From IMG/VR virus record IMGVR_UViG_3300027736_001324, positions 62,001-126,000 of that record: 64,000 nt of DNA; one strand, 5' to 3'. A program made the translations under genes and the position numbers. Shown piece by piece: positions 10,801 to 61,900 of the stretch. Below the pieces are notes generated by a model. The model made no database searches. It worked only from the letters and a program-made list of their open reading frames with translations, and was not told the origin of the DNA. How positions within the stretch are numbered: the stretch's first letter is position 1; the number at the start of each line of letters is the position of its first letter.

Positions 10801-10814
10801 AGATAAATAAATAT

Positions 10815-10967
10815 ATGAACGAAAAACTGGAAGAAAACAAAGAACAAACGCCCGTGGCACAGGAGAAAAAACCCAATGAACACGGGGGTTTTTACTTTTC
10901 TTCCAGCGTAAAGATAACGGACCCAAATACTAAGGAAGTCTTAGTACATACACGAGGCGATAATTAA
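10815..10967 (+). CDS. Small 50-aa protein (MNEKLEE...KITDPNTKEVLVHTRGDN), not in the ORF track
   Basis: ATG 5 nt after TAAATA; the stop abuts the next ATG; resembles the N-terminus of the next protein (KIYDPNNGEIFV). Confidence 0.7.
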   Translation: MNEKLEENKEQTPVAQEKKPNEHGGFYFSSSVKITDPNTKEVLVHTRGDN

Positions 10968-11588
10968 ATGTCAGTAATAACACTATCATATAAAGTAGAA
11001 GGATTTATCAAAATCTATGACCCTAACAATGGGGAAATATTTGTAGACAAGAAAAATGCTATAAATTATGAAACCATGTCTGAGGCCATTGCTGACACAT
11101 TAAGCAGTCGTGGTTACGGGGAAATCTATGAAATGGCGTTTGGGAACGGTGGCGCAAGCGTATCTGAGACCGGAGTTATTACTTATTTGCCCCCAAACGT
11201 AACCGGGCAAAATGCAGCACTATACAATCAAACTTACGCTAAAATCGTAGATGATACAAGTGTTTTTAATTTGGATCCTACACGCAACAAGATGACAGTT
11301 TCTCATACTACAGGGAAGTATTATACAGATATTTTGGTACAATGCTTGTTAGATTACGGTGAACCAGCTGGACAAGCAGCATTTGATAATAGTACACAAA
11401 CCGACAGTTCTTATATTTTTGATGAATTAGGTTTGCTTGCTAATTACGGGACTGATAGTTCGGGAGCAACTATCACTAGATTATTGACCCATGTGATTTT
11501 TCACCCGGTTCAAAAGAGTTTAAATAGACAGATACAAATTGATTACACGGTTAGAATTCAAAGTCTGACAAACTTAGTAACAATTTAA
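10968..11588 (+). CDS. Baseplate/tail-collar-like structural protein
   Basis: 'MAFGNGG', 'FDELGL' and 'HVIFHPVQKS...IQIDYTVRI' motifs typical of tail-fibre attachment proteins; structural gene context. Confidence 0.55.
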   Translation: MSVITLSYKVEGFIKIYDPNNGEIFVDKKNAINYETMSEAIADTLSSRGYGEIYEMAFGNGGASVSETGVITYLPPNVTGQNAALYNQTYAKIVDDTSVFNLDPTRNKMTVSHTTGKYYTDILVQCLLDYGEPAGQAAFDNSTQTDSSYIFDELGLLANYGTDSSGATITRLLTHVIFHPVQKSLNRQIQIDYTVRIQSLTNLVTI

Positions 11589-11619
11589 GATAAATAACAG
11601 ATATCGGAGTAATTTTAAA

Positions 11620-12870
11620 ATGGCATATACAATTGTAAAAAGTAATGGTTCAGTATTAACAACCATTGCTGACGGTACTATTAACACAAATAGTACCTCA
11701 CTAGCATTACCGGGTAGAAACTATGCAGGATATGGTTCCTATCTGGATACCAACTTTGTTCACGCCCTAGAAAATTTTGCAAATGCTTCACCCCCAACAA
11801 ATCCATTACAGGGTCAACTATGGTATAATACTAATGCTAATACATTATGTATTTGTCCAGCTGATGGCACTACTACTGCAAGTTCATGGATCACCCTGGC
11901 ACAATCAGGCAGCGGTGGAACAACAACATTTGGAACAGTTAACGTTACAGGAACATTAACAGCAGGAAATCTTTCTACTGGTGGAACAGTAACCGGGGCA
12001 AATGCAGTAGTTACTAATATATCTGTAAGTGCAAATGCTAATATAACTACCGGAAATCTTACTACCGCTAATATTGGAACAACAAATACTCAACTTATTT
12101 CTACTGGTGCTAATGCTACTAATGGAATACTACAAGGTACTTGGACATTAAACGGCGGTGGCATTGCAGGTAGTGTAGCAGGACTAAGTTTATTAGTTCA
12201 AAATGGTAATCTACAAATTGGAACTGAAGGCAGCACATTAGGAATTAGAACGGACAACTACAGATATGCTAACGGTACTACAGTTAGTTTTGCAGGTACA
12301 TACAACAATAGTAATGTATCTGACTATCTATCAAACGCATCGGTGGCAGGCGGCAGATTTGCAGGATCAATTTACCCGGCTAGTGTAACAACAGCCAATA
12401 TAACTACTGGTGCAAGTGGTACGGCAGGCCAATTTACTGGTAACTGGACATTGACTAGCGGTTCTAGGCTTAATGCAACATACGCTGACTTGGCCGAACG
12501 CTTTGAGGCAGATGCATATTATGATGCAGGAACAGTAGTTGAATTGGGCGGAGAAAAAGAAATCACTAGTGTAAGATACGAATTAAGTGAAGATATATTT
12601 GGTGTTATCTCTGATACTGCTGCTTATTTAATGAATTCAGGTGCAGGAGATAATACAACTCACCCGCCAGTAGCTATGACAGGACGGGTTCAAGTAAAAG
12701 TCACTGGTATAGTAAAGAAAGGTGATCGTTTAGTTAGTGCAGGCAACGGCATAGCACGAGCAGCACAAGCAGGCGAGGCAACTGCGTTTAACGTTATCGG
12801 ACGAGCATTAGAAAATAAAACAACAAATAGCATTGGAACAGTTTTAGCAATTGTTACTGTATCTAAATAA
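11620..12870 (+). CDS. Tail fibre/spike protein with C-terminal intramolecular chaperone (peptidase G2-like) domain
   Basis: N-terminal 'L.GRNYAGYG...NF...LENFA...P..P..GQLWY'; G/T/N-rich shaft; C-terminal 'YADLAERFEAD...GVIS...AMTGRV.VKV...GD.LVS'. Confidence 0.7.
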   Translation: MAYTIVKSNGSVLTTIADGTINTNSTSLALPGRNYAGYGSYLDTNFVHALENFANASPPTNPLQGQLWYNTNANTLCICPADGTTTASSWITLAQSGSGGTTTFGTVNVTGTLTAGNLSTGGTVTGANAVVTNISVSANANITTGNLTTANIGTTNTQLISTGANATNGILQGTWTLNGGGIAGSVAGLSLLVQNGNLQIGTEGSTLGIRTDNYRYANGTTVSFAGTYNNSNVSDYLSNASVAGGRFAGSIYPASVTTANITTGASGTAGQFTGNWTLTSGSRLNATYADLAERFEADAYYDAGTVVELGGEKEITSVRYELSEDIFGVISDTAAYLMNSGAGDNTTHPPVAMTGRVQVKVTGIVKKGDRLVSAGNGIARAAQAGEATAFNVIGRALENKTTNSIGTVLAIVTVSK

Positions 12871-13830: not shown

Positions 13831-13878
13831 TCTTTGTATCCATCTAAATACTCATAGGAGTACTCATGGATACAAAGA
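13831..13878 (+). promoter_or_regulatory. Late promoter (TAAATA 13845-13850) inside a 13-bp perfect inverted repeat that masks the start codon
   Basis: tctttgtatccat (13831-13843) is the reverse complement of atggatacaaaga (13866-13878). Confidence 0.7.
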
Positions 13879-24096: not shown

Positions 24097-24125
24097 GTGT
24101 CTCGGGTTGCACACTAAATAATACT

Positions 24126-24905
24126 ATGAAAATTGCAGTATGTTTTTGGGGACAAATAAGAACCGGTATACATTCGCATCCGAGTATATTATCTTATTTT
24201 GATGGATTATTGGGCAATATAGATTTTTTTACACACACATGGGATACGGAAACAATTTCTTATTGTGAAATAAATGAAAATCCCATGCTTCCAGATTATC
24301 AGTCATTAAAAGAAAAAATATATAATGACTTGTCAACCTTTCAAATTGAAGTGCCAAAGGAAAAATTGAATAATTTTTTAAATATATATCAGCCAAAAAG
24401 ATTTAAAATTGACAATCCACTCAATTTTAAATTTAGTTTACCGGCGCATTATAGAAGCAGATATGAAGTCAATTTGCTGAAACAAGATTATGAAAAAAAT
24501 AATAATTTTGAGTATGATGTAGTTATTAGTATGCGCCCAGACCTTATATTTAATTCTTCTACTAAATTAAGTGCTGATTTAAATAAAGTAAATTTAAATG
24601 GTACTAATATTTACAATCGACACCATACTGATTTAGAAAACAAAGAAGAATTGATTGAAAGTTTATTTATTATAGGAAATTCAAAAAACATGGATTTGTT
24701 TTCCAGCTTTAAAACTTGCGATACAAACACGGGGGAAGATACACAACGATTGGATTATAAATATTCAACCAGTCGAGGATTAAATTTGAAAAGAATAATT
24801 AACTATGACTTTAGGGTGTTTCGATATTATAATAAATTTATGTTTGATATGGGAATATCATTTGATCAAATGATACAAAATTTTTATCTAGGTAAAATAA
24901 TATGA
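24126..24905 (+). CDS. Putative glycosyltransferase, same family, paralog 4
   Basis: MKIAVCFWGQIR...FTHTW...YDVVISMRPD. The start at 24126 matches the paralog N-termini and follows TAAATA-N5. Confidence 0.6.
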   Translation: MKIAVCFWGQIRTGIHSHPSILSYFDGLLGNIDFFTHTWDTETISYCEINENPMLPDYQSLKEKIYNDLSTFQIEVPKEKLNNFLNIYQPKRFKIDNPLNFKFSLPAHYRSRYEVNLLKQDYEKNNNFEYDVVISMRPDLIFNSSTKLSADLNKVNLNGTNIYNRHHTDLENKEELIESLFIIGNSKNMDLFSSFKTCDTNTGEDTQRLDYKYSTSRGLNLKRIINYDFRVFRYYNKFMFDMGISFDQMIQNFYLGKII

Positions 24906-30996: not shown

Positions 30997-31108
30997 AAAA
31001 ATTAAATACTTCATTGTAGAACGATTGTTTGGTAAAATTACCAGAGAATTGCGCTATAGAAAAAGATTAAAAGAATTACGCAAACGAGACCCGTTTATTT
31101 ACAAATGA
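30983..31108 (+). CDS. Small basic 41-aa protein ending RKRDPFIYK, not in the ORF track
   Basis: AAGGA RBS; ATGA-coupled to the carbamoyltransferase gene. Confidence 0.65.
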   Translation: MSILKKIKYFIVERLFGKITRELRYRKRLKELRKRDPFIYK

Positions 31109-32586
31109 ACTATATAGGTATAAGTGCCGGTTTTCATGACGCTGCAATCAGCGTAGTTGATGACCATGGCAACATCTTGTTTGCTGGACATAGTGAACGC
31201 TATAGTAAGAATAAGCATGACAAAGATGTATGTGAAGAATTATTAACGGATGCATTAAAGCACACTAATTCATCATACTTAGAGTATCATTACTATGAAC
31301 GCCCGTGGTTAAAGTCATTACGTCAATTACGCACTGGTGAAGGCTTTACTTGGCCGTCATGGGAAAAGATATTAGGTAGTACATATCATCAGATGGGTAC
31401 ACCTAAAATACATACACATAGTCATCATCTATGTCATGCGGCTGCAGGATTTCAAACAAGTCCATTTGAAGATGCCACTGTTGTTGTGATTGATGCTATA
31501 GGAGAATTTGATACTATCACTATCTGGGATGCTTGGTACGATTTCTCAACGGGCAAAGCACAATACAAAAAACTATGGAGTCTTAAATATCCAGATAGCA
31601 TTGGATTATTCTATTCAGCAATGACTGAACGAGTTGGACTACGCCCATTAGATGAAGAATACATTCTAATGGGTATGGCTGCGTACGGAGAACCTAATCA
31701 TGTTGCTGATATGATTAATGAGTTAGTAGATAAAAAAGATATATTAACCTTCAAGCAAAATCTACACACTGGGGTTAGTAAAGATTTCTTAAAAGATGCT
31801 GATCCATTGGACATTGCTAGCAGTAGTCAACACTTAGTTGAGTACATGATTACTAGAGTAATGAGTAAAGCTAGAACATTGGGTCGTAGTAGAAATCTAG
31901 TATACGGCGGCGGGGTAGCATTGAATTGTTTAGCGAACAGACTATTAGGGAACTTCTATGAAAATATTTGGATTATGCCTAACCCTGGCGATGCGGGTAA
32001 TAGTCTCGGTGCAGCATGTCTTGGGCACAGTCGTAAAACTAATTGGACTGATGCTTTTCTTGGTCATAACATTCCTGGTAAGTATCCTGTTAACGGTTTA
32101 CTTGATGTGTTACTTACTGATAGGATTGTTGGTGTCGCTTCAGGACGAGCAGAGTTCGGCCCGAGAGCATTGGGAAATAGAAGTCTACTCGCAGACCCAA
32201 GAGGCGATGAAATTAAAGATAAAGTAAATGAGATTAAACGTAGACAAAAGTTTAGACCATTTGCTCCTGTCATATTAGAAGAATATGCTCATCAGTATTT
32301 TGAAATGCCTAAGCACTGGCATGATAGTAGATATATGCAGGTTATTAGTAAATGTAAATATCCTGAGAAATTCCCTGCTATTGCACATCACGATTGGACT
32401 AGTAGAGTACAAACTGTACCAAAAGATGGGTCTGGCATCAGAGAGTTATTAGAAAAATGGTATGTAATGACCGAATGCCCAATGTTATTGAACACAAGTT
32501 TAAACATACGTGGCGAGCCAATGGTCAACGACCATAGTGATGCTGATAGGTTTGAAAAACTATATGGAGTTAAGGTTTTGTCATAA
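31105..32586 (+). CDS. O-carbamoyltransferase (NodU/CmcH family)
   Basis: 'HDAA', 'ER...KH', 'HHLCHAA', 'GGVALNC', 'EFGPRALGNRS', 'RPFAP', 'LNTSLN.RGEP'. Confidence 0.92.
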   Translation: MNYIGISAGFHDAAISVVDDHGNILFAGHSERYSKNKHDKDVCEELLTDALKHTNSSYLEYHYYERPWLKSLRQLRTGEGFTWPSWEKILGSTYHQMGTPKIHTHSHHLCHAAAGFQTSPFEDATVVVIDAIGEFDTITIWDAWYDFSTGKAQYKKLWSLKYPDSIGLFYSAMTERVGLRPLDEEYILMGMAAYGEPNHVADMINELVDKKDILTFKQNLHTGVSKDFLKDADPLDIASSSQHLVEYMITRVMSKARTLGRSRNLVYGGGVALNCLANRLLGNFYENIWIMPNPGDAGNSLGAACLGHSRKTNWTDAFLGHNIPGKYPVNGLLDVLLTDRIVGVASGRAEFGPRALGNRSLLADPRGDEIKDKVNEIKRRQKFRPFAPVILEEYAHQYFEMPKHWHDSRYMQVISKCKYPEKFPAIAHHDWTSRVQTVPKDGSGIRELLEKWYVMTECPMLLNTSLNIRGEPMVNDHSDADRFEKLYGVKVLS

Positions 32587-32594
32587 GTAATTAA

Positions 32595-39360: not shown

Positions 39361-39507
39361 ATGTTTATTGGGTTAATGGGTGTTGATAATGATGGCAAAA
39401 CCATGTATACTCCAAATGGTAATAAGATATGGTTCACATTGCCATGGGGACTAGCGTGGAAATTACAAGAGATACAACATTGGATCGCTAAGAAAACTTG
39501 GCGATAA
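39361..39507 (+). CDS. Small 48-aa hypothetical protein (MFIGLMGVD...)
   Basis: Strong AAGGAG RBS. Confidence 0.6.
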   Translation: MFIGLMGVDNDGKTMYTPNGNKIWFTLPWGLAWKLQEIQHWIAKKTWR

Positions 39508-39514
39508 ATAGTAG

Positions 39515-39818: not shown

Positions 39819-39832
39819 TTAAGTTAATACGT

Positions 39833-41601: not shown

Positions 41602-41640
41602 AATTCAATAACTAAATATTTGTGTAACAAAGGAGATTAC

Positions 41641-42636
41641 ATGAAAAAACTATTTGCTATTCTATTAGCGGCTGTAACATTTGCAGCATCAGCACAAGAC
41701 ATTACAGGAGCCGGGGCAACATTCCCGGCTCCGTTGTATTCAAAGTGGGCAAGTGAATATAACAAAGCAACTGGCACTAAAATCAACTATCAATCAGTTG
41801 GTTCAGGAGCTGGCATTAAACAAATTGAAGCAAAGACAGTTACATTCGGTGCAAGTGATATGCCACTTACAGATGACAAACTAGCAGCGTCAGGGTTGTT
41901 TCAGTTTCCGACAGCAATCGGCGGAGTTGTCCCAGTTATCAATGTCAATAACATTGCTCCAGGACAATTGAAATTAACAGGCACAGTTATCGCTGATGTC
42001 TTTTTAGGTAAGATCACTAAATGGGATGACAATGCTATTAAGGCATTGAACCCAACATTAGTTTTGCCTAATCAAGATATTACTGTAGTTCGTAGAGCAG
42101 ATGGTAGTGGTACTACATTTATTTGGACAAACTATCTAAGCAAAGTAAGCAAAGAGTTTAAAGAAGTTATCGGTGAAGGTACTGCTGTAAATTGGAAAGT
42201 TGGAGCAGGCGGTAAGGGCAATGAAGGCGTAGCACAAATGGTTCGTCAACTACCGGGCTCATTGGGATATGTAGAGTTTGCTTATGTTAAACAAACTAAA
42301 ATGAATTGGGTTAACGTACAAAATAGTGCTGGAACTTGGGTGGCCCCAACAGAAGATGCTTTTAAAGCAGCGGCTGCTAATGCTGATTGGAACAAAAGTT
42401 ACTATCAGATACTAACTAATCAAGCAGGCAAAGAAGCATGGCCTATCAGTGGTGCTACATTTATTCTTGTTTACATCAAACCAGAAGATGTTGCTAAGTC
42501 TAAAGCAGCAATGACATTCTTTGATTGGGCATTCAGTAACGGAGATAAAGCAGCAGATGATTTAGATTATGTTGCACTACCAACATCAGTTAAGAACAAG
42601 ATTCGTGCTGATTGGAAACATTTAGGATTATTTTAA
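41641..42636 (+). CDS. pstS: Phosphate ABC transporter substrate-binding protein PstS
   Basis: 'ITGAGATFP', 'GSGAG', 'FGASD', 'RRADGSGTT', 'GKGNEG', 'WPI'. AAGGAG RBS precedes the ATG at 41641. Confidence 0.96.
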   Translation: MKKLFAILLAAVTFAASAQDITGAGATFPAPLYSKWASEYNKATGTKINYQSVGSGAGIKQIEAKTVTFGASDMPLTDDKLAASGLFQFPTAIGGVVPVINVNNIAPGQLKLTGTVIADVFLGKITKWDDNAIKALNPTLVLPNQDITVVRRADGSGTTFIWTNYLSKVSKEFKEVIGEGTAVNWKVGAGGKGNEGVAQMVRQLPGSLGYVEFAYVKQTKMNWVNVQNSAGTWVAPTEDAFKAAAANADWNKSYYQILTNQAGKEAWPISGATFILVYIKPEDVAKSKAAMTFFDWAFSNGDKAADDLDYVALPTSVKNKIRADWKHLGLF

Positions 42637-44193: not shown

Positions 44194-44834
44194 CGTTTCA
44201 TTAAATCGTTAGTAAAATCTAACAGCAACTCATGGTGTCTACCACCATGCCATTTGTCACGCATATAACTATAACTATCATACCAAAATGGTTCTGATTC
44301 TGGATGACAACCAATTAGTCCTATGCGTTTTTGATATATTGCCATTGGATCGCCGTTAGCGTATGTAGCAATTGTTTTGAATTTATGTCTATTACCAACT
44401 AAAGCACACCCATCATAGAAGAACATATTCATGCGTTCATCTTTCCATGTTATTGGTAAATTTTTAGCATGTGGTCTACGTGTATCAGTTCCGGGTTGTT
44501 TGATGTATTGTACGGCATCAACATCATCTAACACATTTAGGTAATAACTACCCGCCCAATATGCACCCATACAGATACCTAAATATCTGCCACCGCCGTG
44601 GATAAAATCTTTTACCCGTTTTCCGTTATTTTTGAATAGTTGTTTGAATGTATCACTATCACCTATTCCGCCGGGAACGGCAATCATGTCTACATCATCA
44701 AAGAAATCATATTCCAATTTGTTTTTGCTAAAGATTTTGAAGTTATAGTATTCACTCAAAGCCTTCATCATCCCATTTCCAGATTGCACGGAACATTTTG
44801 GGTCATACAAAAATAATGCGATTGTGGGTTTCAT
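44190..44834 (-). CDS. Class I glutamine amidotransferase-like (BPL_N-type) protein
   Basis: 'VPGG', 'GGRYLGICMGAY' nucleophile elbow, 'GCHPE'. Confidence 0.8.
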   Translation of the reverse strand: MKPTIALFLYDPKCSVQSGNGMMKALSEYYNFKIFSKNKLEYDFFDDVDMIAVPGGIGDSDTFKQLFKNNGKRVKDFIHGGGRYLGICMGAYWAGSYYLNVLDDVDAVQYIKQPGTDTRRPHAKNLPITWKDERMNMFFYDGCALVGNRHKFKTIATYANGDPMAIYQKRIGLIGCHPESEPFWYDSYSYMRDKWHGGRHHELLLDFTNDLMKR

Positions 44835-44861
44835 CACAACTATTTATGTTAGGGAAAACAC

Positions 44862-44890
44862 TTGACATAAATATCTCAGGATAGTATAAT
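44862..44890 (+). promoter_or_regulatory. Early sigma70-type promoter
   Basis: TTGACA-17-TATAAT. Confidence 0.85.
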
Positions 44891-44896
44891 GTTATT

Positions 44897-45151
44897 ATGA
44901 GAATAGAAAAGTCTTTGGATTGGCAACAGGTGTCTAGTAAAATACGCACTGATTTGAATAATATTGGGTACAATCCAGACTTAAAACGGATGTTTAATAA
45001 CATCAACACTATGGTATCAGAATTAAGTAAATTAGAAGTAAATGGGCGTAGATTACATACTGATAATTTTACTAAAGAGCCATTAGAAAAAATTAACAAA
45101 GCAATAGACCATTTAGAAAAATTAATTCTAATGGGTTTACTTATGAAATGA
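44897..45151 (+). CDS. Hypothetical protein
   Basis: ATG 6 nt after the -10 box; coupled to the next gene. Confidence 0.65.
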   Translation: MRIEKSLDWQQVSSKIRTDLNNIGYNPDLKRMFNNINTMVSELSKLEVNGRRLHTDNFTKEPLEKINKAIDHLEKLILMGLLMK

Positions 45152-47301: not shown

Positions 47302-47347
47302 ATGTTTTTAGTTTGTTAGTGTTAGTAAATATCTTAAAGGAAACAAA

Positions 47348-48454
47348 ATGGCATATTCAGTAGTTAGCGACAATCTTACAGTTACTTCAGTACAAGCCCG
47401 TAAGGCTATGCTGAAAGCATTTAAATCTAAGCGCCCACTCTTTCTCTGGGGCCCTCCCGGTATCGGTAAATCAGAAGTTGTGGCAGAAGTAACTGCTGAA
47501 CTTGGCGGTCATATGATTGACTTGCGTATGGCACAAATGGAGCCTACTGACATTCGCGGTATCCCATACTTCAATAAGGACCTCAATAAGATGGATTGGG
47601 CATCTCCCGTAGACTTGCCTGACGAGGATCTCGCATCACAATACCCTATCGTTGTTCTTTTCTTAGATGAAATGAATAGCGCATCACCCGCAGTACAGGC
47701 TGCTGGCTATCAATTGATTCTTAATCGCCGTGTAGGTAAGTATGTACTGCCTGATAACGTTGTTATCGTAGCAGCAGGTAATCGTGAATCTGACAAAGGT
47801 GTTACTTATCGTATGCCGATGCCCCTTGCTAATCGTTTCTTGCACTTGGAAATGCGCCCTGACTTTACAGCATGGCAAAACTGGGCAGTGAACAAAGGCA
47901 TTCACAAGGATGTGGTTGGTTACTTGTCGTTTGCTAAACAAGACTTGTACGATTTTGATAGCAAAAGTTCAAGCCGTGCTTTCGCTACACCACGCACTTG
48001 GTGCTTTGTTTCTGACTTGCTAGATGACGAGGCAGATACTGATACTGATACGTTGTTCAATCTGATTGCAGGTTCAGTTGGTGAAGGTCTCGCAGTTAAG
48101 TTTGCGGCCCATCGCAAAACATCAGGCAAGATGCCCGACCCGGCAGATATTCTTTCTGGCAAAGTAACTACATTGTCTGTGAAAGAAATTTCGGCAATGT
48201 ATTCATTGACAATTTCAATGTGCTATGAGTTGAAGGATGCATTGGAAGTACAAAAAGTGAACAACAAAAAGTTTCACGAAATGGCTGACAATTTCTTCAC
48301 ATACATCATGGCTAACTTTGAAACAGAGTTGGTTGTAATGGGTGCTAAAATTGCGCTTAAGACTTACAAGTTGCCGATTGAGCCTAGTCAATTGAAACAC
48401 TTTGATGAGTTTCACAAAAAGTACGGTAAGTACATTGTAGACGCAGGCAATTGA
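47348..48454 (+). CDS. MoxR-like AAA+ ATPase
   Basis: Walker A 'GPPGIGKS', Walker B 'LFLDE', 'AAGN', 'LANRF', 'TPRTW'. Confidence 0.9.
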   Translation: MAYSVVSDNLTVTSVQARKAMLKAFKSKRPLFLWGPPGIGKSEVVAEVTAELGGHMIDLRMAQMEPTDIRGIPYFNKDLNKMDWASPVDLPDEDLASQYPIVVLFLDEMNSASPAVQAAGYQLILNRRVGKYVLPDNVVIVAAGNRESDKGVTYRMPMPLANRFLHLEMRPDFTAWQNWAVNKGIHKDVVGYLSFAKQDLYDFDSKSSSRAFATPRTWCFVSDLLDDEADTDTDTLFNLIAGSVGEGLAVKFAAHRKTSGKMPDPADILSGKVTTLSVKEISAMYSLTISMCYELKDALEVQKVNNKKFHEMADNFFTYIMANFETELVVMGAKIALKTYKLPIEPSQLKHFDEFHKKYGKYIVDAGN

Positions 48455-50909: not shown

Positions 50910-50975
50910 TACTTATAGAAAATATTTCATTGAGTATAATAGATATTAAATATCTATGCACTCTAGGAGAATAAT

Positions 50976-51704
50976 ATGAGTTTTTTAAAACATGTCGGTA
51001 AACAAGGTGATCGTAAGGTTGCTATCATTTTTCGTGAGATTCCAGGTGAACCTCACATGTGTCTTGTAACATATACAGAAACACTAAATCAACACATTCA
51101 CGATCCATTGATCCGTTGTATTGAAAGTGATATTGGGCAACATTCTGAATCATTATCAGATGCACTAAACCGCACATTGGGTTTAGATGGTCGTCCTATC
51201 TTACAAGTATTACATGCTGAAGGTTTACTAAAGAAAGTAAACACAGAAAATATTATTGTCACCCCAAATCCTCAAACTAAAATCAAGTTAAATGAACTTA
51301 ATAAGATTTTAACTGAGATGAAGCAAGGAGAAGAAGCAGTTAAACGTATGGCTGATATTGATCAAAGCAGAGGAATGCAAACTCCTGCAGAGGTAGCACG
51401 TAGACAACGTGAAAACAAAACCCGTGATGCTAAGGTTCAACAACCACCATTGATGGCTAGTGGCAATGATGCATTAGGCGATCAAATGTTAGCAAACAAT
51501 TTGCGTCAACAAGCAGCTAGAATGGCAGCAGAGGCTAAAGGATTGATGGCTGAAAGTCAAGACCTATTAAAGCAAGCAGCAGCAATGGATCCTCCTGTAA
51601 TGGAGAAGAAGCCACGTGCATCTAAGAAAGCAGTTGTAGTTGAAGCCCCAGTAGCAACACCTGCACCTAAGGTAAAGAAAACAAGAGCAAAAGTTAGTGC
51701 ATAA
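50976..51704 (+). CDS. Hypothetical protein
   Basis: AGGAG RBS; late motif upstream; K/A/P-rich tail. Confidence 0.7.
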   Translation: MSFLKHVGKQGDRKVAIIFREIPGEPHMCLVTYTETLNQHIHDPLIRCIESDIGQHSESLSDALNRTLGLDGRPILQVLHAEGLLKKVNTENIIVTPNPQTKIKLNELNKILTEMKQGEEAVKRMADIDQSRGMQTPAEVARRQRENKTRDAKVQQPPLMASGNDALGDQMLANNLRQQAARMAAEAKGLMAESQDLLKQAAAMDPPVMEKKPRASKKAVVVEAPVATPAPKVKKTRAKVSA

Positions 51705-52908: not shown

Positions 52909-53162
52909 CACTAGAACCAGATACAATTGAATGCGTAGTACACACCATTAAGATGGGTGATGTAGAAGATCCTGATTTGTATGTTGCTGAACCAATTTGG
53001 AAATGGCAACAAACAGAAGAAGGACAATGGCTTATGAAAAATAGTAAGCCGGCTCCAATTTGGAAAAGATATCACGATCCAATGATATATGGTTATTCAT
53101 ACACCATCCATGCCTTTTTAAAATCAAAAGATTACGTATTTTGGAGTTTAAAGTATAAATGA
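52905..53162 (+). CDS. Hypothetical protein
   Basis: 'MGDVEDPDLY' motif; coupled to neighbours. Confidence 0.65.
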   Translation: MTLEPDTIECVVHTIKMGDVEDPDLYVAEPIWKWQQTEEGQWLMKNSKPAPIWKRYHDPMIYGYSYTIHAFLKSKDYVFWSLKYK

Positions 53163-54175
53163 ATATATTAATAACAGGTGGACTTGGACTTATTGGACAT
53201 AACGTAGTCACACGATTACAAGATTTGGGACATCAAGTATCAATTGTTGATAACAAAACTAATTATGGTATTATACCTCAAAGTGAAATTGATTATCTTA
53301 TAAGCGAACGAGAAAAGAAAGTTGTTAATGATAAATTTATTAACACCTTAAGTTTTATCTATAACAAAGATATTGCAGATGTTGGGGAAATGGATAATGT
53401 CCTTCATATTGAAGAACCCGAAATTGTTATTCACATGGCTAGCTTTCCTAGGCAGAAAGTAGTTAATAGTAATCCAGCATTGGGCAGTCGTACAATGAGT
53501 GAAGGGTTACTAAATTTATTAGAATTATCTAATAAGTACGAAGTCCGTAAATTTATATATCTTAGTAGTTCAATGGTATACGGAGACTTTACAGACGATG
53601 TAAAAGAAGATGCTATTTGTAAACCGCAAGGTCAGTATGGCATTATGAAATTAGCAGGTGAGTGGCTAGTGCGTGATTATTCTCGCAAAACCAATCTTGT
53701 ACATACTATTATTCGTCCAAGTGCAGTATACGGTCCATTAGATGTAGAAGATAGAGTTATCAGTAAATTCTTACTTACAGCAATGCGAGGTGACGCAATA
53801 AAAGTAAACGGTGAAAAAGAAACACTAGACTTTACTTATGTTGATGACGCTGCTGATGGAATTGTTGCGGCTACACTAAGCGATAACACCGAGAACAAAA
53901 CATACAATATTACAAAGAGCCATAGCGTTACATTATTAGAAGCTGCACAGATGGCACTAAAATTAGCAGGTGGTGGTACACTATCTGTGTATCCCAAGGA
54001 CAGTGATTTCCCATCACGGGGAGCATTGAACATTGATGCTGCACGTAGAGACTTTGGGTATGATCCTAAAGTTGATGTAGCTGAAGGATTTCAGAAATAT
54101 TATGAGTGGTTAATTAATGATCCATACTTCAATAAAGATAAATATATGAATGTGGATTCTATCATATCTTCCTGA
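53159..54175 (+). CDS. NAD-dependent nucleotide-sugar epimerase/dehydratase
   Basis: 'ITGGLGLIG', 'SSSMVYG', YxxxK 'YGIMK', 'DFTYVDD'. Confidence 0.9.
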   Translation: MNILITGGLGLIGHNVVTRLQDLGHQVSIVDNKTNYGIIPQSEIDYLISEREKKVVNDKFINTLSFIYNKDIADVGEMDNVLHIEEPEIVIHMASFPRQKVVNSNPALGSRTMSEGLLNLLELSNKYEVRKFIYLSSSMVYGDFTDDVKEDAICKPQGQYGIMKLAGEWLVRDYSRKTNLVHTIIRPSAVYGPLDVEDRVISKFLLTAMRGDAIKVNGEKETLDFTYVDDAADGIVAATLSDNTENKTYNITKSHSVTLLEAAQMALKLAGGGTLSVYPKDSDFPSRGALNIDAARRDFGYDPKVDVAEGFQKYYEWLINDPYFNKDKYMNVDSIISS

Positions 54176-54662
54176 TTTCGTAACTCATATCATCTTTACT
54201 GTCGGAGTTGTAGGAACTATCGCTGGATTTGTTCTAGGTTTTATCCCTTTTATTGCTACATATAAACTCCCTATACAGATTATCAGTATTTTAGTATTAA
54301 GTTTTGGTTTATTCTTAGAGGGCGGATTAGCTGACCAAGCAGTTTGGCAGCTTAAAGTCAAAGAAATGGAAGCTAAAGTTGCTAAAGCTGAGACTGAATC
54401 ACAGAAAGTAAACACAGAAGTTGTTACCAAGATACTTACCAAGAAGCAAGTAATCAAAGAAAAGGGTGATGACATAGTGCAATTTATTGACAGGGAAATT
54501 GTCAAATATAACAATATCTGCGAAATCCCAGAGATAGTTATCACTACTCACAACGCAGCAGCAAAGAATGACCCAACCTTATTAAAGAAACAGATAGAAG
54601 TTCCTACTGATTTACATAATCAATTGGCTACCCCACCGATGATATTGGCCCCAAGAAAATGA
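54150..54662 (+). CDS. Inner-membrane spanin (Rz-like) candidate
   Basis: N-terminal TM helices plus coiled coil and C-terminal Cys; overlaps a downstream lipoprotein gene. Confidence 0.6.
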   Translation: MWILSYLPDFVTHIIFTVGVVGTIAGFVLGFIPFIATYKLPIQIISILVLSFGLFLEGGLADQAVWQLKVKEMEAKVAKAETESQKVNTEVVTKILTKKQVIKEKGDDIVQFIDREIVKYNNICEIPEIVITTHNAAAKNDPTLLKKQIEVPTDLHNQLATPPMILAPRK

Positions 54663-54931: not shown

Positions 54932-54964
54932 ACTGATAAATACACTATAGTTTAGGATATAGAG

Positions 54965-55510
54965 ATGACCCAAGAAATAATCAATATAGGTGCACAACCC
55001 AACGATGGGGAAGGTGATCCGTTACGTACAGCCTTTGAGAAGATTAACAATAATTTTTCACAATTATACGGTACAGGGTTTTTTACTAGCAATGCGTACA
55101 CAGTGGGAAACACCTCTCAAGTTATATATGAAACCCCTGCAAATGCATTTACACAGGCAACATTTCAAATTAATTCTCAAAACGTAGATAACATGGATAG
55201 TCAAAACATTACGTTAAATGCCAGTATACTTAATGACTTAGACGGCGTAAGATGGAATGGTCACAGTACAATGTTTAACGGTAATTACCTTACACAATAT
55301 GATATGGATGTTTTTGATTCAAATGTTCGTATATTAGTTACTCCATTGACAGATAATGCTGCTACGTTATTTCACTTTATCTCATCACAGGTTACCTGGA
55401 TTGGAGAACCTGTTCCAGGATTGAATATTCAATTAAATGATTATCCTGATAGTATCATGGAAACAGAAAATTATTTGGATATGCAAACCGAGACCGATAG
55501 TATAATATGA
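54965..55510 (+). CDS. Structural protein with T4 gp9/gp10-like N-terminal motif
   Basis: 'INIG..PNDG.GDPLR.AF.KIN.NF'. Confidence 0.65.
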   Translation: MTQEIINIGAQPNDGEGDPLRTAFEKINNNFSQLYGTGFFTSNAYTVGNTSQVIYETPANAFTQATFQINSQNVDNMDSQNITLNASILNDLDGVRWNGHSTMFNGNYLTQYDMDVFDSNVRILVTPLTDNAATLFHFISSQVTWIGEPVPGLNIQLNDYPDSIMETENYLDMQTETDSII

Positions 55511-56264: not shown

Positions 56265-56316
56265 TCAGAACATCAAATCCTAGAATAAGTAATTATATCA
56301 AATTATAGGATTCTTG

Positions 56317-57018
56317 ATGCTAATCGATATTAACAAAACACTAGATTTAATTAAACTTAAATTTTACAACGAATGGTTATACACCGCTCATATCTATGAA
56401 GAAGGTGATAGCGAACTACACAAGGGGTTAACCGAAACTGTAGTTAAACAATACATTGACCCACTTGAAATTCCCAAAGATGCTAAAATCTTAGATTTAG
56501 GCTGCGGCCCGGGCTATTTCTTAGACGAGATGAAATCTAGAGGTTATACTGATTTAACTGGGGTAACATTAAGCCCAGGTGATATAAAAATCTGTGAAGA
56601 TAAAGGGCATACAATTAAAAAGTATGATTTAACTTTCATCCCGCAAAGTGAAGGTTACTATGATGAATCAGTAGATATGATATTCTTGCGTCATGCATTA
56701 GAACATAGTCCATATCCTATCTTTAGTTTAATGGAATATAATCGTATATTAAAGCAGGGTGGCAAGATTTACATTGAAGTCCCGCAACCTGATTGTGAAA
56801 GACGCCATGAAGATAACTTAAATCATTACAGTATTTTGGGGCAAACTCAACTAGCAGCATTGATTGTTAGAACTGGATTTAACATTGATAAATTCGATAA
56901 TTTTGAATTTGATGTTGAATTCCCTGATCAGGAGAACCCAGGGGAACCTAATCTTAAAGCAAAAGAGAAATTCTATTGCATCGTTGCTACTAAGCAACGA
57001 CCTTTAGATATCAAGTAA
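56317..57018 (+). CDS. Class I SAM-dependent methyltransferase
   Basis: 'ILDLGCGPG', 'RHALEHS', 'RILKQGG'. Confidence 0.85.
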   Translation: MLIDINKTLDLIKLKFYNEWLYTAHIYEEGDSELHKGLTETVVKQYIDPLEIPKDAKILDLGCGPGYFLDEMKSRGYTDLTGVTLSPGDIKICEDKGHTIKKYDLTFIPQSEGYYDESVDMIFLRHALEHSPYPIFSLMEYNRILKQGGKIYIEVPQPDCERRHEDNLNHYSILGQTQLAALIVRTGFNIDKFDNFEFDVEFPDQENPGEPNLKAKEKFYCIVATKQRPLDIK

Positions 57019-57053
57019 AACAATAAATACTCACTACATGTGAGTATTTTTTT

Positions 57054-57332
57054 ATGTTCGATCCATTTAAACAAGCAAAAATTCAAAACGGTTATGCCAA
57101 ACTCAGAGGCATTAAACTCCCTGAGAAGGATATGACATTAGATGAACTAAAACAATTGAGTGGGTCTGGACAAGTCACTGGTGAATATTCATATACACTA
57201 TTACATGAATTAGCGCAAAAGAAACAACAATATATGCGTGAGAATAATATCAAGCCAGGTGACAAAGAATGGTTTAGAGTTATGTTTGCTAAAACACATC
57301 TTACAGGTGAAGATCCGTTTTCTAAAAACTAG
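57054..57332 (+). CDS. Hypothetical late protein
   Basis: 'ELKQLSG' and 'MRENNIKPG..EWF' motifs; directly upstream of terminase. Confidence 0.6.
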   Translation: MFDPFKQAKIQNGYAKLRGIKLPEKDMTLDELKQLSGSGQVTGEYSYTLLHELAQKKQQYMRENNIKPGDKEWFRVMFAKTHLTGEDPFSKN

Positions 57333-57355
57333 TAGTTACCGTAATAAATACATTT

Positions 57356-58912
57356 ATGGCAACCAATAATGCAGGACCTTCGTTAGTAAAGAATCCCTAT
57401 ACAAAGACGAAATTTAAGAATGATAAGGAATTACAGGACTTTATAAAGTGCTGTGACCCAGACACAGGTTATCTATACTTCATGGATAACTTCTTTATGA
57501 TACAACACCCTACCATGGGCAGCTTAGTATATCATCCATACGGATATCAAAAACGATTAATAGAAACTTATCATAACTATCGCTATAGTATTAGCTTGAT
57601 GCCACGACAGTCAGGTAAATCAACAAGCGCAGCCGGATACTTACTCTGGTATGCCATGTTCAAACCAGACAGTACGATTCTTATCGCAGCACATAAGTAC
57701 ACGGGCGCACAAGAGATCATGCAGCGTGTTCGTTACGCATATGAAAACTGTCCAGACTATATCAAAGCAGGTGTAACAACATATAACAAAGGCTCATTGG
57801 ACTTTGAGAATGGTAGTCGTATTGTAAGTGCAACTACAACTGAAAACACAGGTCGTGGTATGAGTATTACACTACTATACCTTGACGAGTTTGCGTTCGT
57901 TAGACCAAGTATCGCTAAAGAATTCTGGACAGCTATTACTCCAACATTAAGTACTGGTGGTAAAGCTATTATCACAAGTACACCAAACAGTGACGAAGAT
58001 CAGTTTGCCTTCATCTGGAAAGGTGCTAACAAAACTGAAGATGAATTTGGTAACACAACTGAATTAGGTATCAATGGCTTTAGAGCATATAGAGCAGAGT
58101 GGCATGAACAACCAGGTAGAGATCAGAAGTGGGCTGATGAAATGAAAGCACAGCTTGGTGAGGATCGTTTCAACCGAGAGATTGGTTGCGAATTCATTAT
58201 CGCTGATGAAACACTTATTAATCCTAATACATTATTAATGTTAGAAGGAATAGAACCAGTTAGTCGTATGGGACAAGTTCGTTGGTATCAGAAGCCAAAA
58301 AAGGGCAGTATCTATACAGTATCATTAGATCCAAGTCTTGGTACAGGTAGTGATCCAGCGGCAATACAAATCTTTGAAGCAAATACTGTTACACAGATTG
58401 GTGAGTGGAAACACAACAAAACTGATATCCCAACACAGATTAAACTTATTGCACAAATAAACAAATACATAGTTGAATGTACAGGTGAACCAAACAATTT
58501 ATATTATTCTGTAGAGAATAACAGTATCGGTGAGGCCTCATTAGTGTCATTAAACGAATATGGAGAGAACAATATCCCCGGAACATTCATTAGCGAACCG
58601 GGCAAGAAGCGTAAGGGCTTTAATACTACAAACAAGAGTAAATTAACCGCTTGCGCCAAGTTTAAGACATTACTAGAAAGCAAGAAACTAACCATTAATA
58701 GTCGTAGTCTTATCAGCGAGTTGAAAGCGTTTGTAGCACATGCGGGTAGTTATGCTGCCAAGATCGGTGATACAGATGATTTAATTATGGCCAGCTTATT
58801 AAATGTCAGAATGATTCAAGAATTAGGGTCATATCACTTTGAATTAGATAGTTATGTCAAGGACCACGAGGAATTTATTGCACCCTTGCCCTTCTTTGCC
58901 GTGCTAAGTTGA
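57356..58912 (+). CDS. Terminase large subunit (T4 gp17-like)
   Basis: Walker A 'PRQSGKS', 'GRG.S', Walker B 'LLYLDEFAF', 'ITSTPN', nuclease 'SLDP...DDLIMA'. Confidence 0.95.
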   Translation: MATNNAGPSLVKNPYTKTKFKNDKELQDFIKCCDPDTGYLYFMDNFFMIQHPTMGSLVYHPYGYQKRLIETYHNYRYSISLMPRQSGKSTSAAGYLLWYAMFKPDSTILIAAHKYTGAQEIMQRVRYAYENCPDYIKAGVTTYNKGSLDFENGSRIVSATTTENTGRGMSITLLYLDEFAFVRPSIAKEFWTAITPTLSTGGKAIITSTPNSDEDQFAFIWKGANKTEDEFGNTTELGINGFRAYRAEWHEQPGRDQKWADEMKAQLGEDRFNREIGCEFIIADETLINPNTLLMLEGIEPVSRMGQVRWYQKPKKGSIYTVSLDPSLGTGSDPAAIQIFEANTVTQIGEWKHNKTDIPTQIKLIAQINKYIVECTGEPNNLYYSVENNSIGEASLVSLNEYGENNIPGTFISEPGKKRKGFNTTNKSKLTACAKFKTLLESKKLTINSRSLISELKAFVAHAGSYAAKIGDTDDLIMASLLNVRMIQELGSYHFELDSYVKDHEEFIAPLPFFAVLS

Positions 58913-58930
58913 GTTTAAGATAAATACATT

Positions 58931-61900
58931 ATGCCTACGAATACAGAATCACTAAACCGCGAATTGTTTAGATTATTGTCTAAATATAAACCAAAACCCC
59001 TGGATGCTGAGGGCAAAGCCACTCCTGTTCCAGAAGAAGCAGATATTTTCAAGTTTGAATTCACTAAAGACGGAGAAGATTACGGAACTGTTTATGTTAC
59101 ATTAGATGATGAACGTGTACTGACTGTCTATTTTGGCGATGACGTATCCGATAGTCCCGGCGACAAAACACCTGGATTAGATTATGATGACACATGGAGT
59201 GGGTTACTACATCAATTAAGTTCTTGGAGAATGACCAAGGGCCTAAGAGGATTCAAAACACAAAACAAAGACCGAGTCGGAGATGACATGGCAAGAAGGA
59301 ACCATATGAGAAACAAAGATAAAATAGCAGAGGGTTACTACCCAATGGGCAAGAGTCGCAGTTATAGTGATGCTGTACCTAGCGTAAAGATTGTTATTGA
59401 ACATAGCCGTGTCATTGAAGAAGGTGAACAACGCTATCGTAATATCAATAGAATTTTCTTAGAGAATCAAGACGGTGAACGCTATTTACTTGATACTAAG
59501 AAGCCTGGTATTGCCCGTGTCTATGCTAGACATATTGCTGAAGGTGGCAAAGTCAATGATGACCGTTGGAGTCATATTGGTAATCTTTGTGAAGAATATC
59601 AAAAGATGGCTGGATTTGTCCGTGCTACACGTAATGGACAATTCAATGAATCAGCACAAGCATTAGTTAACGAAGGACTAGAACACTATCAAAGTCTACG
59701 TGAATCATTAAGCCGTATGACTGGTAAGCGTGGATATAACGCTTATTTTGAAAGTTGGACTCCACCTTTGATGGAAGATGGAACTGAAGAAAACAATCTA
59801 AACGAATTGTTTGTACAAGAGACATTAGATCCACGCATTGAAAGCGTAATGCCAATATTGAATAGAATACATAAAAAAGTTTCTGAATCAATAGTTGATA
59901 AAGAAATGAACAAGTTAGCAGAGTGGGCTGATAGTTTAGTTGAAGAAGAAAGTCTAACAAGTAATAATCCAGGTGGCATTCCTGAAGATCGCAGTTTAAA
60001 GACAGAGGCCAAGTACGATCCAACCGTCGATGGTTCACACAGCTACGGCACAGATTTGCTATTCAATATTCGTATGCTATACATATATGCTAGAGACGGT
60101 AGGGACACCCGTCATCAGATTGCATCGTTGAAGAATTTAAAAGATGGAATTGAACAAAGTGAAGAACCGCGTCTTATCCAGTGCTACGACTACCTAATGA
60201 AGAATCTTGCTGGTGGAACAGTGACTGATCCTAAAATGATAATGCAAATAGCAGATAAGGCTCATCAATTATTTCACCCAAGCCTTGAACCCATTGCACA
60301 AGCAACTCGTGAGGGTGTAGAAATGGAAGAAGCTATTACTCCAGGTGCTTCTTTACAAAGATTTAGAAACGATCCTAGAGGTAATGAAAAATTACCTGCA
60401 AAAGAAGTTGACGAAGGCAGTTCAGAAAACAAATATTCTAACTTATCTAACCGCGGAGTAACTCGTGGAATAAATCGTGCCGCTGATGATTTTGACAGAT
60501 TTATGGACCTTGACCAAGTAGAATCACCACATTATAAAACACAACATCAACAAGATACAAAGCAAAGACTAAAAACAAAACCAATGGCAGGTCCTAAGGG
60601 GCAATTACCTGAAGAGCAAGGTGTGGCGGAAGAAGGTCTTGATGCTAATCAAAAGCGTGTAGGTCAATTAGGCCCAACAGAGAAAGTTAAAAACAATAAC
60701 ATTGGTAAACTAGTCGGTGCTAATGAAAACTTTATCAACCAAGCTAGCCAAGCAGTTACAACTGAAGAAGATGAGGGTATGTTTGGTAGATCCAAAAACG
60801 ATAAACGTTATTTAGATAAATTTGATCCAACTGAAGTGATGAACATCAGTGATGATCCTAGTAAGGCACATAAAACAACGGGCAAGGGTTCATTAAGAAC
60901 ATCTAAGGAAGATTTAGAATTTGCATTTGGACCACCCGGAGAAGATGATACATGGGTTTTAGAATTTGGTAATGGATTAATTGCTACTATATATCCTCAA
61001 TCTAACAGTGGTGGCATGGATTGGATCATAGGTGGTAATCATCCAGACACTGAAGATTTTGTGCATATGGCTTATTCGGCTGCGCTTGATGATGAACTTG
61101 AAGAAGGTGAACATACTCAACATGCCATGCGCGGCCGCAATCCTGGTGCTAACGAATTTGAACATGATTTTGAAAATGATAAGATTGATAACATCCATGA
61201 CAAGATATCAAAGATGTTAAAGAGATTAGAGAAACCAAAACATGAACCAAGTATGAAAGATACCGATCTTGGCAATACATTACATGAAGTAGACACTGGT
61301 GAATATGATGCCCGTAAATCAACTCATAAGGGTGAAACTACTCCAGAACAGGAAAAGGAATTCCGTAAGAAAGTAGACACATACGGCAAAGAATTAGAAC
61401 AGAGACAAAAAGAAAAGGGTAATGTAAAAGAAGGGCAAGAAGATTTTGATGCTATTCTAAGAATCATTAGCAAGAAAAATGTGAAAGAAAGCATCCAATT
61501 AAATGAAAGTCTCATGGATTCATTGAACAGTATGATTGCTAAAATTAAAGCAATGCCAGGAATACAAAAATATATTCAAATGGCACAATCCAAGAAAGCA
61601 GAATTGACTCAAGCATTACAACATAGTGCAAATGGTAAAGATTTAGTTGCAAACATTCAACAAGCAGTTGGCGGACAACAAGCTGTAGCTGAAGGTTGGG
61701 GTCAAAAAATCGGCGGCGCTGTGGCTGCTAGTGCAGGCGGCGGTCTATTAGCAGGTGCTGCCGACATTATGATGAGAGCATATATTGCTATGGGTAAACC
61801 AGATTTAACACAGATGATGAATGACCCTAATGGTAAAAATGCTTTGGTACTAGTATCAATGTTAGTTGTATTGGGTGCATTAGCAATGTTTGCCGGCGGC

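Follow-up and report, generated by a model that had tools for sequence, protein, structure and literature searches.

The question raised by this locus is whether a phage can place its promoters so close to its start codons that transcription and translation begin at the same base. The window analysed here, a stretch of 64,000 nucleotides, is part of a 264-kb IMG/VR jumbo-phage contig from an uncultured freshwater phage (G000, about 69% complete), whose terminase places it with the RaK2/GAP32/PA5oct-like phages. In this phage and its close relatives, about one gene in ten has a promoter box 4-6 bases before its ATG with no ribosome-binding site, so these genes are most likely expressed as leaderless mRNAs. 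An earlier note had listed seven TAAATA or TAAGTA boxes at fixed distances before ATGs and one early promoter with its -10 box 6 nt before an ATG, and all eight sites are present in the sequence as it described them (Table 1; d, or N in the motif formulae, is the number of nucleotides between motif and ATG). A near-identity search of the phage collection returned no match.

Table 1. Promoter-like boxes and associated start codons in the window (positions of the 64,000-nt stretch; G001 is a related 524-kb contig).
Position (strand)	Motif and spacing	Gene	Other observations
10804..10817 (+)	TAAATA (10804)-N5-ATG (10815)	50-aa ORF (10815-10967), followed directly by the ATG at 10968	G001 orthologue (71% identity) also has TAAATA-N5-ATG; alignment starts at Met1
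24115..24128 (+)	TAAATA (24115)-N5-ATG (24126)	24126-24905 (259 aa); upstream neighbour divergent (22740-24041, minus strand)	phrog_13607 profile aligns from residue 1 of this start
32584..32597 (+)	TAAGTA (32584)-N5-ATG (32595)	32595-38639 (2014 aa); the TAA is also the stop codon of gene 31105-32586	TAAGTA-N5-ATG kept in the G001 orthologue (75% identity) with a different spacer; translational coupling cannot be excluded
44832..44846 (-)	TAAATA (44846..44841)-N6-ATG (44834..44832)	44190-44834 (214 aa), divergent from gene 44897	Layout not conserved in the G001 orthologues, which are 'none' and a d=17 leader
44862..44899 (+)	TTGACA (44862)-N17-TATAAT (44885-44890)-N6-ATG (44897)	Predicted early leaderless gene (84 aa)	Perfect sigma-70 consensus (12/12 match); one of 5 TATAAT-N6-ATG starts in G000
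54139..54152 (+)	TAAATA (54139)-N5-ATG (54150)	170-aa membrane-type protein (54150-54662); motif inside the 3' end of gene 53159-54175	TAAATA kept at N4-N8 before the orthologues in 33 related contigs at 48-99% protein identity
57345..57358 (+)	TAAATA (57345)-N5-ATG (57356)	Large terminase (57356-58912)	[AC]TAAATA-N4-6-ATG kept in 76 of 79 related contigs while the upstream context diverges; JGI gene calls give the same 518-aa start
58921..58933 (+)	TAAATA (58921)-N4-ATG (58931)	1021-aa virion structural protein (58931-61996)	Motif kept at N4-N7 in most relatives; one sub-clade has moved it to d=21 with a leader
11591..11622 (+)	gaTAAATA, 23 nt containing GGAG, ATG 11620	Leadered example	
13845..13868 (+)	cTAAATA, 15 nt containing AGGAG, ATG 13866	Leadered example	
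41613..41643 (+)	cTAAATA, 22 nt containing AAGGAG, ATG 41641	Leadered example	
47326..47350 (+)	TAAATA, 16 nt containing AAGGA, ATG 47348	Leadered example	
50947..50978 (+)	TAAATA, 23 nt containing AGGAG, ATG 50976	Leadered example	A TATAAT lies 6 nt further upstream
54937..54967 (+)	gaTAAATA, 22 nt containing TAGGAT, ATG 54965	Leadered example	Motif, spacing and SD conserved in about 30 relatives
56286..56319 (+)	gaaTAAGTA, 25 nt containing AGGA, ATG 56317	Leadered TAAGTA variant	TAAGTA conserved in about 45 distinct relatives
57024..57056 (+)	TAAATA forming the 5' arm of a 10-bp hairpin followed by a T-run, which abuts ATG 57054		

As TAAATA is common in AT-rich DNA, the earlier note had rested its case on the fixed spacing and had named a spacing peak above background as the test, and this peak exists. 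With start codons chosen by coding potential alone, without reference to the motif, TAAATA lies at d=4 in 7 and at d=5 in 10 of 271 genes of G000, where internal ATGs predict 0.23 (P~2e-26) and the other upstream positions predict 1.97 (P~5e-11). In G001 the count at d=4 and d=5 is 40 against 0.53 expected (P~8e-60; P~6e-24 against the other upstream positions), although G001 is two related genomes joined head to head, so that its counts are not 614 independent genes. The reverse-complement motif shows no peak. The observation of the earlier note is thus confirmed, and far beyond chance. The gene-free count over any ATG is much weaker, with 25 against 18 in G000, which carries 327 copies of TAAATA on both strands, and in five related large contigs the N6 spacing is not above control in the gene-free count, although N6 is the commonest spacing before the terminase of those relatives. 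TAAGTA is a minor variant with 2 cases at d=5, while a TAAATA-N3-ATG at 16020 looks like chance, as the orthologue lacks it.

The distribution of spacings has two peaks, at d=4-5 and at d=16-27, separated by a near-empty zone at d=9-15, with per-position means for the first peak, the near-empty zone and the second peak of 4.2 / 0.7 / 2.6 in G000 and 10.8 / 1.1 / 6.5 in G001, which is what is expected if a 5'UTR must be either absent or long enough to hold a Shine-Dalgarno (SD). In the second peak an AGGA/AAGG SD usually lies between motif and ATG. The abutting class comprises 74 genes in G000 and G001, with spacings N3:1, N4:21, N5:34, N6:6, N7:7 and N8:5, and all listed starts are ATG. SD-like tetramers at -17..-5 occur in 0 of 22 abutting genes of G000 and 1 of 52 of G001 (0-2%), but in 55-73% of leadered genes and in 42-48% of genes without the motif (42% in G000).

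The motif, (G)(A/C)TAAATA(C), has the same flanks whether it abuts the ATG or lies 16-27 nt upstream with an SD between, namely A or C at -1, G at -2 and C at +1 relative to the hexamer. It has no -35 partner: in 183 motif-bearing upstream regions of G000 and G001, information content is at most 0.2 bit at every position from -40 to -3, and only the two bases before TAAATA (G, then A/C) are informative. It matches the late promoter already predicted for the jumbo phages CBB and GAP32 (PMC5259590). A gp55-family late sigma factor of 303 aa is encoded at G000:C1:39452-40363(-), as identified by profile search (phrog_12791, 'sigma factor for late transcription', 3e-73; phrog_234, 'late sigma transcription factor', 3e-21) and by tblastn with CBB_244 (36% identity, 4e-48). 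Homologues of the co-activator gp33 and the sliding clamp gp45 were not detected in the incomplete G000, where PF09116 (gp45 C-terminal domain) gave only a 15-bit hit, below the cut-off, and tblastn with the Syn9 gp33-like protein gave nothing better than E=1.7, and the authors of the CBB study also found neither; full T4-type activation is thus unproven. The abutting genes include the terminase, virion structural and baseplate-wedge-like proteins and a homing endonuclease, while many carriers have no annotation, and their late expression is predicted only.

The register of the motif agrees with this assignment. The T4 numbering places TATAAATA at -13..-6 (PMC2988020), so N5 puts the A of the ATG at +1, whereas spacings of N4 and N6-N8 need a start 1-2 nt away from the T4 rule. 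An A-rich position 5-7 nt after the box in leadered promoters gives indirect support for a start about 6 nt after the box. The remark of the earlier note on the early promoter is part of a wider pattern, as TATAAT-N6-ATG is enriched, occurring 5 times in G000 and 10 times in G001, some with a perfect TTGACA-N17. The sigma-70 box TATAAT lies at -12..-7 by textbook numbering, and its peak one base further out, at N6, matches the offset between the two promoter registers.

The spacing is conserved through strong sequence divergence, both before the terminase and before neighbouring genes (Table 1). The class is kept in 11 of 16 G000-G001 orthologue pairs, whose proteins align from Met1, and independent JGI gene calls on contigs carrying the exact terminase, all from DNA metagenomes, use the same starts. 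Abutting genes follow a divergent gene in 27-29% of cases, against 5% of motif-less genes, as would be expected of genes that need a promoter of their own; most motifs are wholly intergenic, and only 1 of 22 and 5 of 52 use the TAA as the upstream stop, which argues against stop-codon coupling as a general cause. In several relatives a terminator-like hairpin ends 8 nt before the motif. When four lake metatranscriptomes were mapped on G000:21769-25776, contigs covered only the major capsid gene and its upstream neighbour, with zero depth over the two abutting promoters in that stretch, which says nothing about 5' ends.

The explanation that is best supported, and is considered likely, is that (G)(A/C)TAAATA(C) is the late promoter of this phage, read by host RNA polymerase core carrying the gp55-family sigma factor without need of a -35 element. 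In about 40% of the genes directly behind such a promoter the ATG starts 4-6 nt after the motif, where a -10-type element places the transcription start, so the mRNA would begin with AUG or have at most 1-2 extra bases and would be translated by the leaderless (SD-independent, 5'-AUG-dependent) route in an as yet unidentified host. The remaining late promoters, 16-27 nt from the ATG, would give leaders of about 10-20 nt, usually carrying an SD, and the same arrangement would serve host sigma-70 promoters in the early region. The motif, its spacing statistics, the lack of an SD, the sigma gene, the conservation and the absence of the layout in cultured relatives are shown by the sequence analysis, while the transcription start position and the translation route are inferred without transcript 5' ends. 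The interpretation of the earlier note, a T4-gp55-type late promoter placed so that +1 falls on the A of the ATG, is supported within these limits, but its description of leaderless mRNAs as a systematic strategy needs qualifying, as the layout covers about 8% of genes and about 40% of late-promoter-proximal genes.

Among other readings, TAAATA might act at the RNA level, as an AU-rich, SD-independent ribosome landing or re-initiation signal on polycistronic transcripts, in which case the genes would not be leaderless. Many abutting genes do lie in same-strand arrays with gaps of 11-40 nt and could be translated from read-through transcripts by an SD-independent route, the TAA is the upstream stop codon in a few cases, and 27-45% of leadered late genes also lack a clear SD, so SD-independent initiation must occur in this phage anyway. 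This reading is nevertheless unlikely, as the element is a specific hexamer with the flanks of the distal promoter copies rather than general AU-richness, no upstream sense transcript is expected behind divergent genes, only 6 of 74 motifs use the TAA as a stop, and an RNA signal would not predict that sigma-70 promoters complete with a -35 box show the same abutting geometry shifted by exactly one base.

It is very unlikely that the abutting ATGs are not the real starts and that translation begins downstream of a normal leader that happens to contain an ATG. The start codons are computational calls, and before gene 57054 an ATG 8 nt after TAAATA is followed at once by TGA, with the called start 16 nt further on. 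However, orthologous proteins align from residue 1 with conserved residues right behind the Met, third-position changes behind the terminase ATG follow a coding pattern, and the phrog_13607 profile and the JGI calls agree with the abutting starts. Chance in AT-rich DNA, despite the abundance of TAAATA and the modest gene-free excess, is refuted by the counts against internal ATGs and other upstream positions, and the layout is conserved across diverged contigs.

T4, Syn9, KVP40, GAP32, CBB, PA5oct, Phosso, Atu_ph07 and a Vibrio jumbo phage show no such enrichment. T4 late transcription likewise relies on a gp55 sigma and a single AT-rich -10-type box with no -35 element and an AT-rich stretch downstream, in front of virion and packaging genes, but the box here is (A/C)TAAATA rather than TATAAATA, and in T4, Syn9 and KVP40 TAAATA-N4/5-ATG is not above control. 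CBB and GAP32, of the same broad lineage by terminase, share the predicted motif including the A/C before it, and the sigma is related to CBB_244; however, in a 50-kb structural region of CBB the motif lies 26-38 nt before the ATG, with a strong GGAG between, and never within 8 nt, PA5oct shows one peak at 16-27 nt and a single N5 case among 60 genes, and whole-genome N5 counts match the controls. In Deinococcus-Thermus (PMC12340547) a -10-type element a few bases before the ATG, with an optional -35 box, replaces the ribosome-binding site and gives leaderless mRNA for a large share of genes, but that is a cellular phylum using its housekeeping sigma, whereas here a phage would use both the host sigma and its own gp55-type sigma, while most of its other genes use an SD. 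Phage transcripts beginning at the AUG include lambda cI mRNA from pRM, the one such gene of lambda, and reportedly many middle and late genes of Thermus phage phiYS40 (Sevostyanova et al. 2007, PMID 17187825), which infects a host phylum where leaderless mRNA is the norm and is not known to use gp55-type promoters. Literature searches on leaderless expression together with gp55, TATAAATA or jumbo-phage late promoters found, among open-access papers, none describing this layout.

Leaderless mRNAs are usually discussed as a trait of certain cellular phyla or of single phage genes, while here a known promoter class (gp55-type) appears to have been repositioned many times, so that transcription and translation would start at the same base, and close cultured relatives with the same promoter keep ordinary leaders. 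This offers a natural comparison for why a virus would choose leaderless expression and how ribosomes of an SD-using host would cope with it, and in this clade the motif pins down true start codons and marks late genes in uncultured genomes. A more far-reaching possibility, which remains doubtful, is that a whole clade of freshwater jumbo phages of the T4 superfamily has moved a large share of its early (host sigma-70) and late (phage gp55-type sigma) genes to leaderless expression by fusing promoters to start codons, in a host that otherwise uses SD sites, giving a class of messages whose translation could be favoured or protected as a block during infection, possibly with help from phage-encoded bS21 and IF1. 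No specific correlation with these factors was found, as bS21 is present in G000, G001 and G002 but also in PA5oct, Phosso, Atu_ph07 and the Vibrio phage, which lack the layout, while IF1 is in G001, G002 and Phosso, and no IF3 was found. The tmRNA does not resolve the host, as the only genome with the same tag peptide is a 1.8-kb contig binned as Bacteroidetes, which shares little else with the phage, while Rfam places the tmRNA in the betaproteobacterial family.

The 263,709-bp IMG/VR virus contig (designated G000), of which the window covers bases 62001-126000, is estimated by CheckV to be 69% complete and has a G+C content of 36-37%. Its large terminase is 42-50% identical to those of Sinorhizobium phage Phosso, Pseudomonas phage PA5oct, a Vibrio jumbo phage, GAP32, CBB and Atu_ph07, which are RaK2/GAP32/PA5oct-like jumbo phages of the T4 superfamily. 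At least 599 IMG/VR contigs, many from lake samples, carry a terminase related to it, and the 80 best of these are 85-100% identical. The positions of the features concerned are listed in the table below.

Locations of the features in the window, in G000 and in related phages
Location	Strand	Feature
window 10815		Start codon of a candidate leaderless gene
window 24126		Start codon of a candidate leaderless gene
window 32584		Motif at which stop-start coupling remains possible
window 54150		Start codon of the 170-aa membrane-type protein
window 57356-58912		Large terminase
window 58931		Start codon of the 1021-aa virion protein
window 44862-44897	+	Perfect 12/12 sigma-70 consensus promoter (TTGACA-N17-TATAAT) abutting the ATG at 44897
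window 46038, 46354	+	Perfect 12/12 sigma-70 consensus promoters (TTGACA-N17-TATAAT) not abutting their ATG
window 57024-57056	+	TAAATA box forming the 5' arm of a hairpin, with ATG at 57054
window 39468-39826	+	Permuted (two-piece) tmRNA
window 1-10800 (G000:C1:53008-72800)		Single open reading frame of about 6,597 codons
G000:C1:39452-40363	-	gp55-family late sigma factor
G000:C1:22370-23125	-	Homing endonuclease (phrog_655, 5e-45)
G000:C1:256387-256536 (+); G001:C1:63744-63896 and 471943-472095; G001:C1:89943-90134 and 448305-448490		Ribosomal protein bS21 and, in G001 and G002, initiation factor IF1
L141:44974-44987 (NC_071039.1 about 144974-144987; ATG at 144985)		taTAAATA-N5-ATG of PA5oct gp262

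The observation of the earlier note, that TAA(A/G)TA lies at a nearly fixed short distance before a set of start codons, is confirmed, as every site that it listed is present as described. To test the spacing without circularity, 271 genes of G000 were called with a codon-usage log-odds model, where each start was chosen by coding potential and start-codon type only and never by upstream sequence, and the distance d from the last A of TAAATA to the A of the start codon was then measured. TAAATA is found at d=4 in 7 genes and at d=5 in 10 genes, while internal ATGs of the same genes predict 0.23 for these two positions together (P~2e-26) and the other positions of the 80-nt upstream regions predict 1.97 (P~5e-11). 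The reverse-complement hexamer shows no peak. The distribution has two peaks, with 22 cases at d=3-8, only 5 at d=9-15 and 31 at d=16-27, beyond which the count falls to background. A related contig, G001 (IMGVR_UViG_3300027749_002876, 524,565 bp, rated 100% complete, terminase 87% identical), treated in the same way, gave 16 cases at d=4 and 24 at d=5 (P~8e-60 for d=4+5), a trough at d=9-15 (8 cases) and a second peak at d=16-27 (78 cases). This contig (loci L110-L136) consists of two collinear genomes of about 74% nucleotide identity joined head to head in inverted orientation, probably an assembly chimera of two related phages, and therefore represents two further diverged genomes rather than one.

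Genes with TAAATA at 16-27 nt usually have AGGA, AAGG or GGAG between the motif and the ATG (55% in G000 and 73% in G001), whereas genes with the motif at 3-8 nt have such a Shine-Dalgarno in 0 of 22 and 1 of 52 cases, and genes without the motif have one in 42-48% of cases. Both classes share the same flanks, with A or C just before the motif, G before that and C just after, while nothing is conserved around -35. G000 encodes a gp55-family late sigma factor, which matches phrog_12791 at 3e-73 and phrog_234 at 3e-21 and is 36% identical to the CBB late sigma, although gp33 and gp45 homologues were not detected. ATAAATA/CTAAATA has been predicted as the late promoter of CBB and GAP32 and likened to T4 TATAAATA (PMC5259590). 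TAAATA is thus best read here as a gp55-type late promoter, and the sites of the earlier note are the subset in which this promoter abuts the start codon.

In T4, the box TATAAATA occupies -13 to -6, as the review speaks of 'A(-13) in place of T' (PMC2988020). Five bases therefore separate the box from +1, and TAAATA-N5-ATG would put the A of the ATG at +1, while with N4, or with N6-7, the start would have to shift by one or two bases, or a 1-2-nt leader would result. The argument does not rest on the exact T4 rule, as any -10-type element places the start several bases downstream of itself, so that with 4-6 bases to the ATG there is no room for a leader that could hold a ribosome-binding site. 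The empty zone at d=9-15 fits this, as a 5'UTR of about 3-9 nt is neither leaderless nor long enough for a Shine-Dalgarno. The interpretation of the earlier note, that these genes are expressed from gp55-type late promoters as leaderless mRNAs, is supported by statistics, anatomy and comparison but not yet by RNA ends: the motif, its spacing, the lack of a Shine-Dalgarno and the conservation are read directly from the sequences, while the position of the transcription start and the leaderless expression itself are inferred. Lake metatranscriptomes contain capsid-region RNA of this phage, but the contigs placed on G000:21769-25776 covered only the capsid gene and its upstream neighbour and not the two abutting promoters in that stretch. 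About 8% of all genes and about 40% of late-promoter-proximal genes (22 of 53 in G000 and 52 of 130 in G001) are of the abutting type, plus a smaller set of early genes.

An unforeseen internal control is provided by the host-type -10 box TATAAT, which also peaks next to start codons but one base further away, at d=6, with 5 cases in G000 (P~8e-7) and 10 in G001 (P~4e-12). Several of these carry a perfect TTGACA at 17 nt, including the early promoter whose -10 box the earlier note had placed 6 nt before the ATG. This is one of three perfect sigma-70 consensus promoters which lie within 1.5 kb and mark an early region, and only the first of the three abuts its ATG. By textbook numbering the sigma-70 box lies at -12 to -7, one base further from +1 than the T4 late box, so that both promoter types are predicted to put +1 on the A of the ATG. 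A signal acting at the RNA level would not predict this offset. Coupling between the stop codon of the preceding gene and the start is likewise not the general cause, as only 1 of 22 and 5 of 52 abutting motifs use their TAA as the upstream stop codon, though it remains possible at one site. The abutting genes also appear to need a promoter of their own, since 27-29% of them follow a divergently oriented gene, against 5% of genes without the motif. Motif-less genes have a median gap of 2 nt to the gene before, which marks them as operon-internal, while the gap is 18-41 nt for abutting genes and 45-49 nt for leadered genes.

In 76 of 79 related contigs with a readable upstream region, the terminase ATG is preceded by [A/C]TAAATA at N4, N5 or N6, while the sequence further upstream differs completely between sub-clades. 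In about nine contigs a hairpin with A- and T-runs ends 8 nt before the box, and it is scored as terminator-like on the minus strand of one of them (L055). The genes for the 1021-aa virion protein and the 170-aa membrane-type protein keep the box at N4-N8 down to about 40-50% protein identity. One sub-clade (orthologous loci L023, L025, L027, L029, L031, L034 and L035) has moved the box of the 1021-aa gene to d=21, replacing TAAATA-N4/5-ATG by TAAATA plus a 21-nt leader (ctctattagaaaactaccaa) with no recognisable Shine-Dalgarno, which shows that the two layouts interconvert. Between G000 and G001, abutting genes stay abutting in 11 of 16 orthologue pairs, and leadered genes stay leadered in 17 of 26. 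The proteins of abutting orthologues align from Met1, and the independent JGI gene calls use the same starts for the terminase and the 1021-aa gene; the ATGs are therefore the real starts.

TAAATA-N5-ATG or N4/5-ATG is not above the backwards-pattern control in PA5oct, Phosso, the Vibrio phage, Atu_ph07, CBB, GAP32, T4, Syn9 or KVP40. With the authors' own gene coordinates, a 50-kb structural region of CBB has the box only at 26-38 nt, with strong GGAG sites, while a 50-kb region of PA5oct has one peak at 16-27 nt and a single N5 case, gp262, behind a divergent gene. This structural protein, seen by mass spectrometry, is the one candidate leaderless late gene in a cultured relative for which RNA-seq exists (PMC7318152). 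In contrast, close relatives of G000 show the N5 excess: G001 45 against 12, and the contigs G002 and G003 12 against 6 and 12 against 4 on the main coding strand. The promoter is shared with the wider lineage, while the abutting placement is a trait of this freshwater clade. What would be new is the combination of gp55-type late promoters with leaderless expression, each of which is already known, and no paper linking gp55-type promoters with leaderless mRNA was found in the open-access literature searched. The nearest functional parallel is the '-10 box adjacent to ORFs' of Deinococcus-Thermus, which has been shown by experiment to give leaderless mRNA for about a third of genes (PMC12340547).

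As for the host, perfect TTGACA/TATAAT promoters and frequent AGGA sites point to a bacterium using Shine-Dalgarno sites. The phage encodes a permuted tmRNA with the tag peptide ANDELFALAA, for which Rfam RF04321 tmRNA_permuted scores 129 bits and RF01850 beta_tmRNA scores 112 bits (gathering 84); as a clue to the host, it scores best with the betaproteobacterial family. The only genome sharing its tag peptide is a 1.8-kb contig of a MAG binned as Bacteroidetes. The clade also encodes ribosomal protein bS21 and, in G001 and G002, IF1, while no IF3 was found. No link to the abutting layout is drawn from these factors, as bS21 is also present in PA5oct, Phosso, Atu_ph07 and the Vibrio phage, and IF1 in Phosso, cultured relatives which lack the layout.

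The homing endonuclease gene lies just downstream of the major capsid gene, behind a hairpin with a T-run, and has its own TAAATA-N5-ATG. Metatranscriptome depth is zero over it while the capsid gene is covered, which may mean that other strains lack the insertion. In the gene starting at window position 57054, the hairpin that has the TAAATA box as its 5' arm is 10 bp long and is followed by a T-run that abuts the ATG, and an ATG-TGA pair lies inside the hairpin, 8 nt after the box. In two relatives the same gene starts at that position (N6-N8). The G000 lineage may therefore have shifted its start by an indel, and transcripts from this box would lack the 5' arm of the hairpin. The open reading frame of about 6,597 codons at the beginning of the window is preceded by TAAGTA 25 nt before its ATG.
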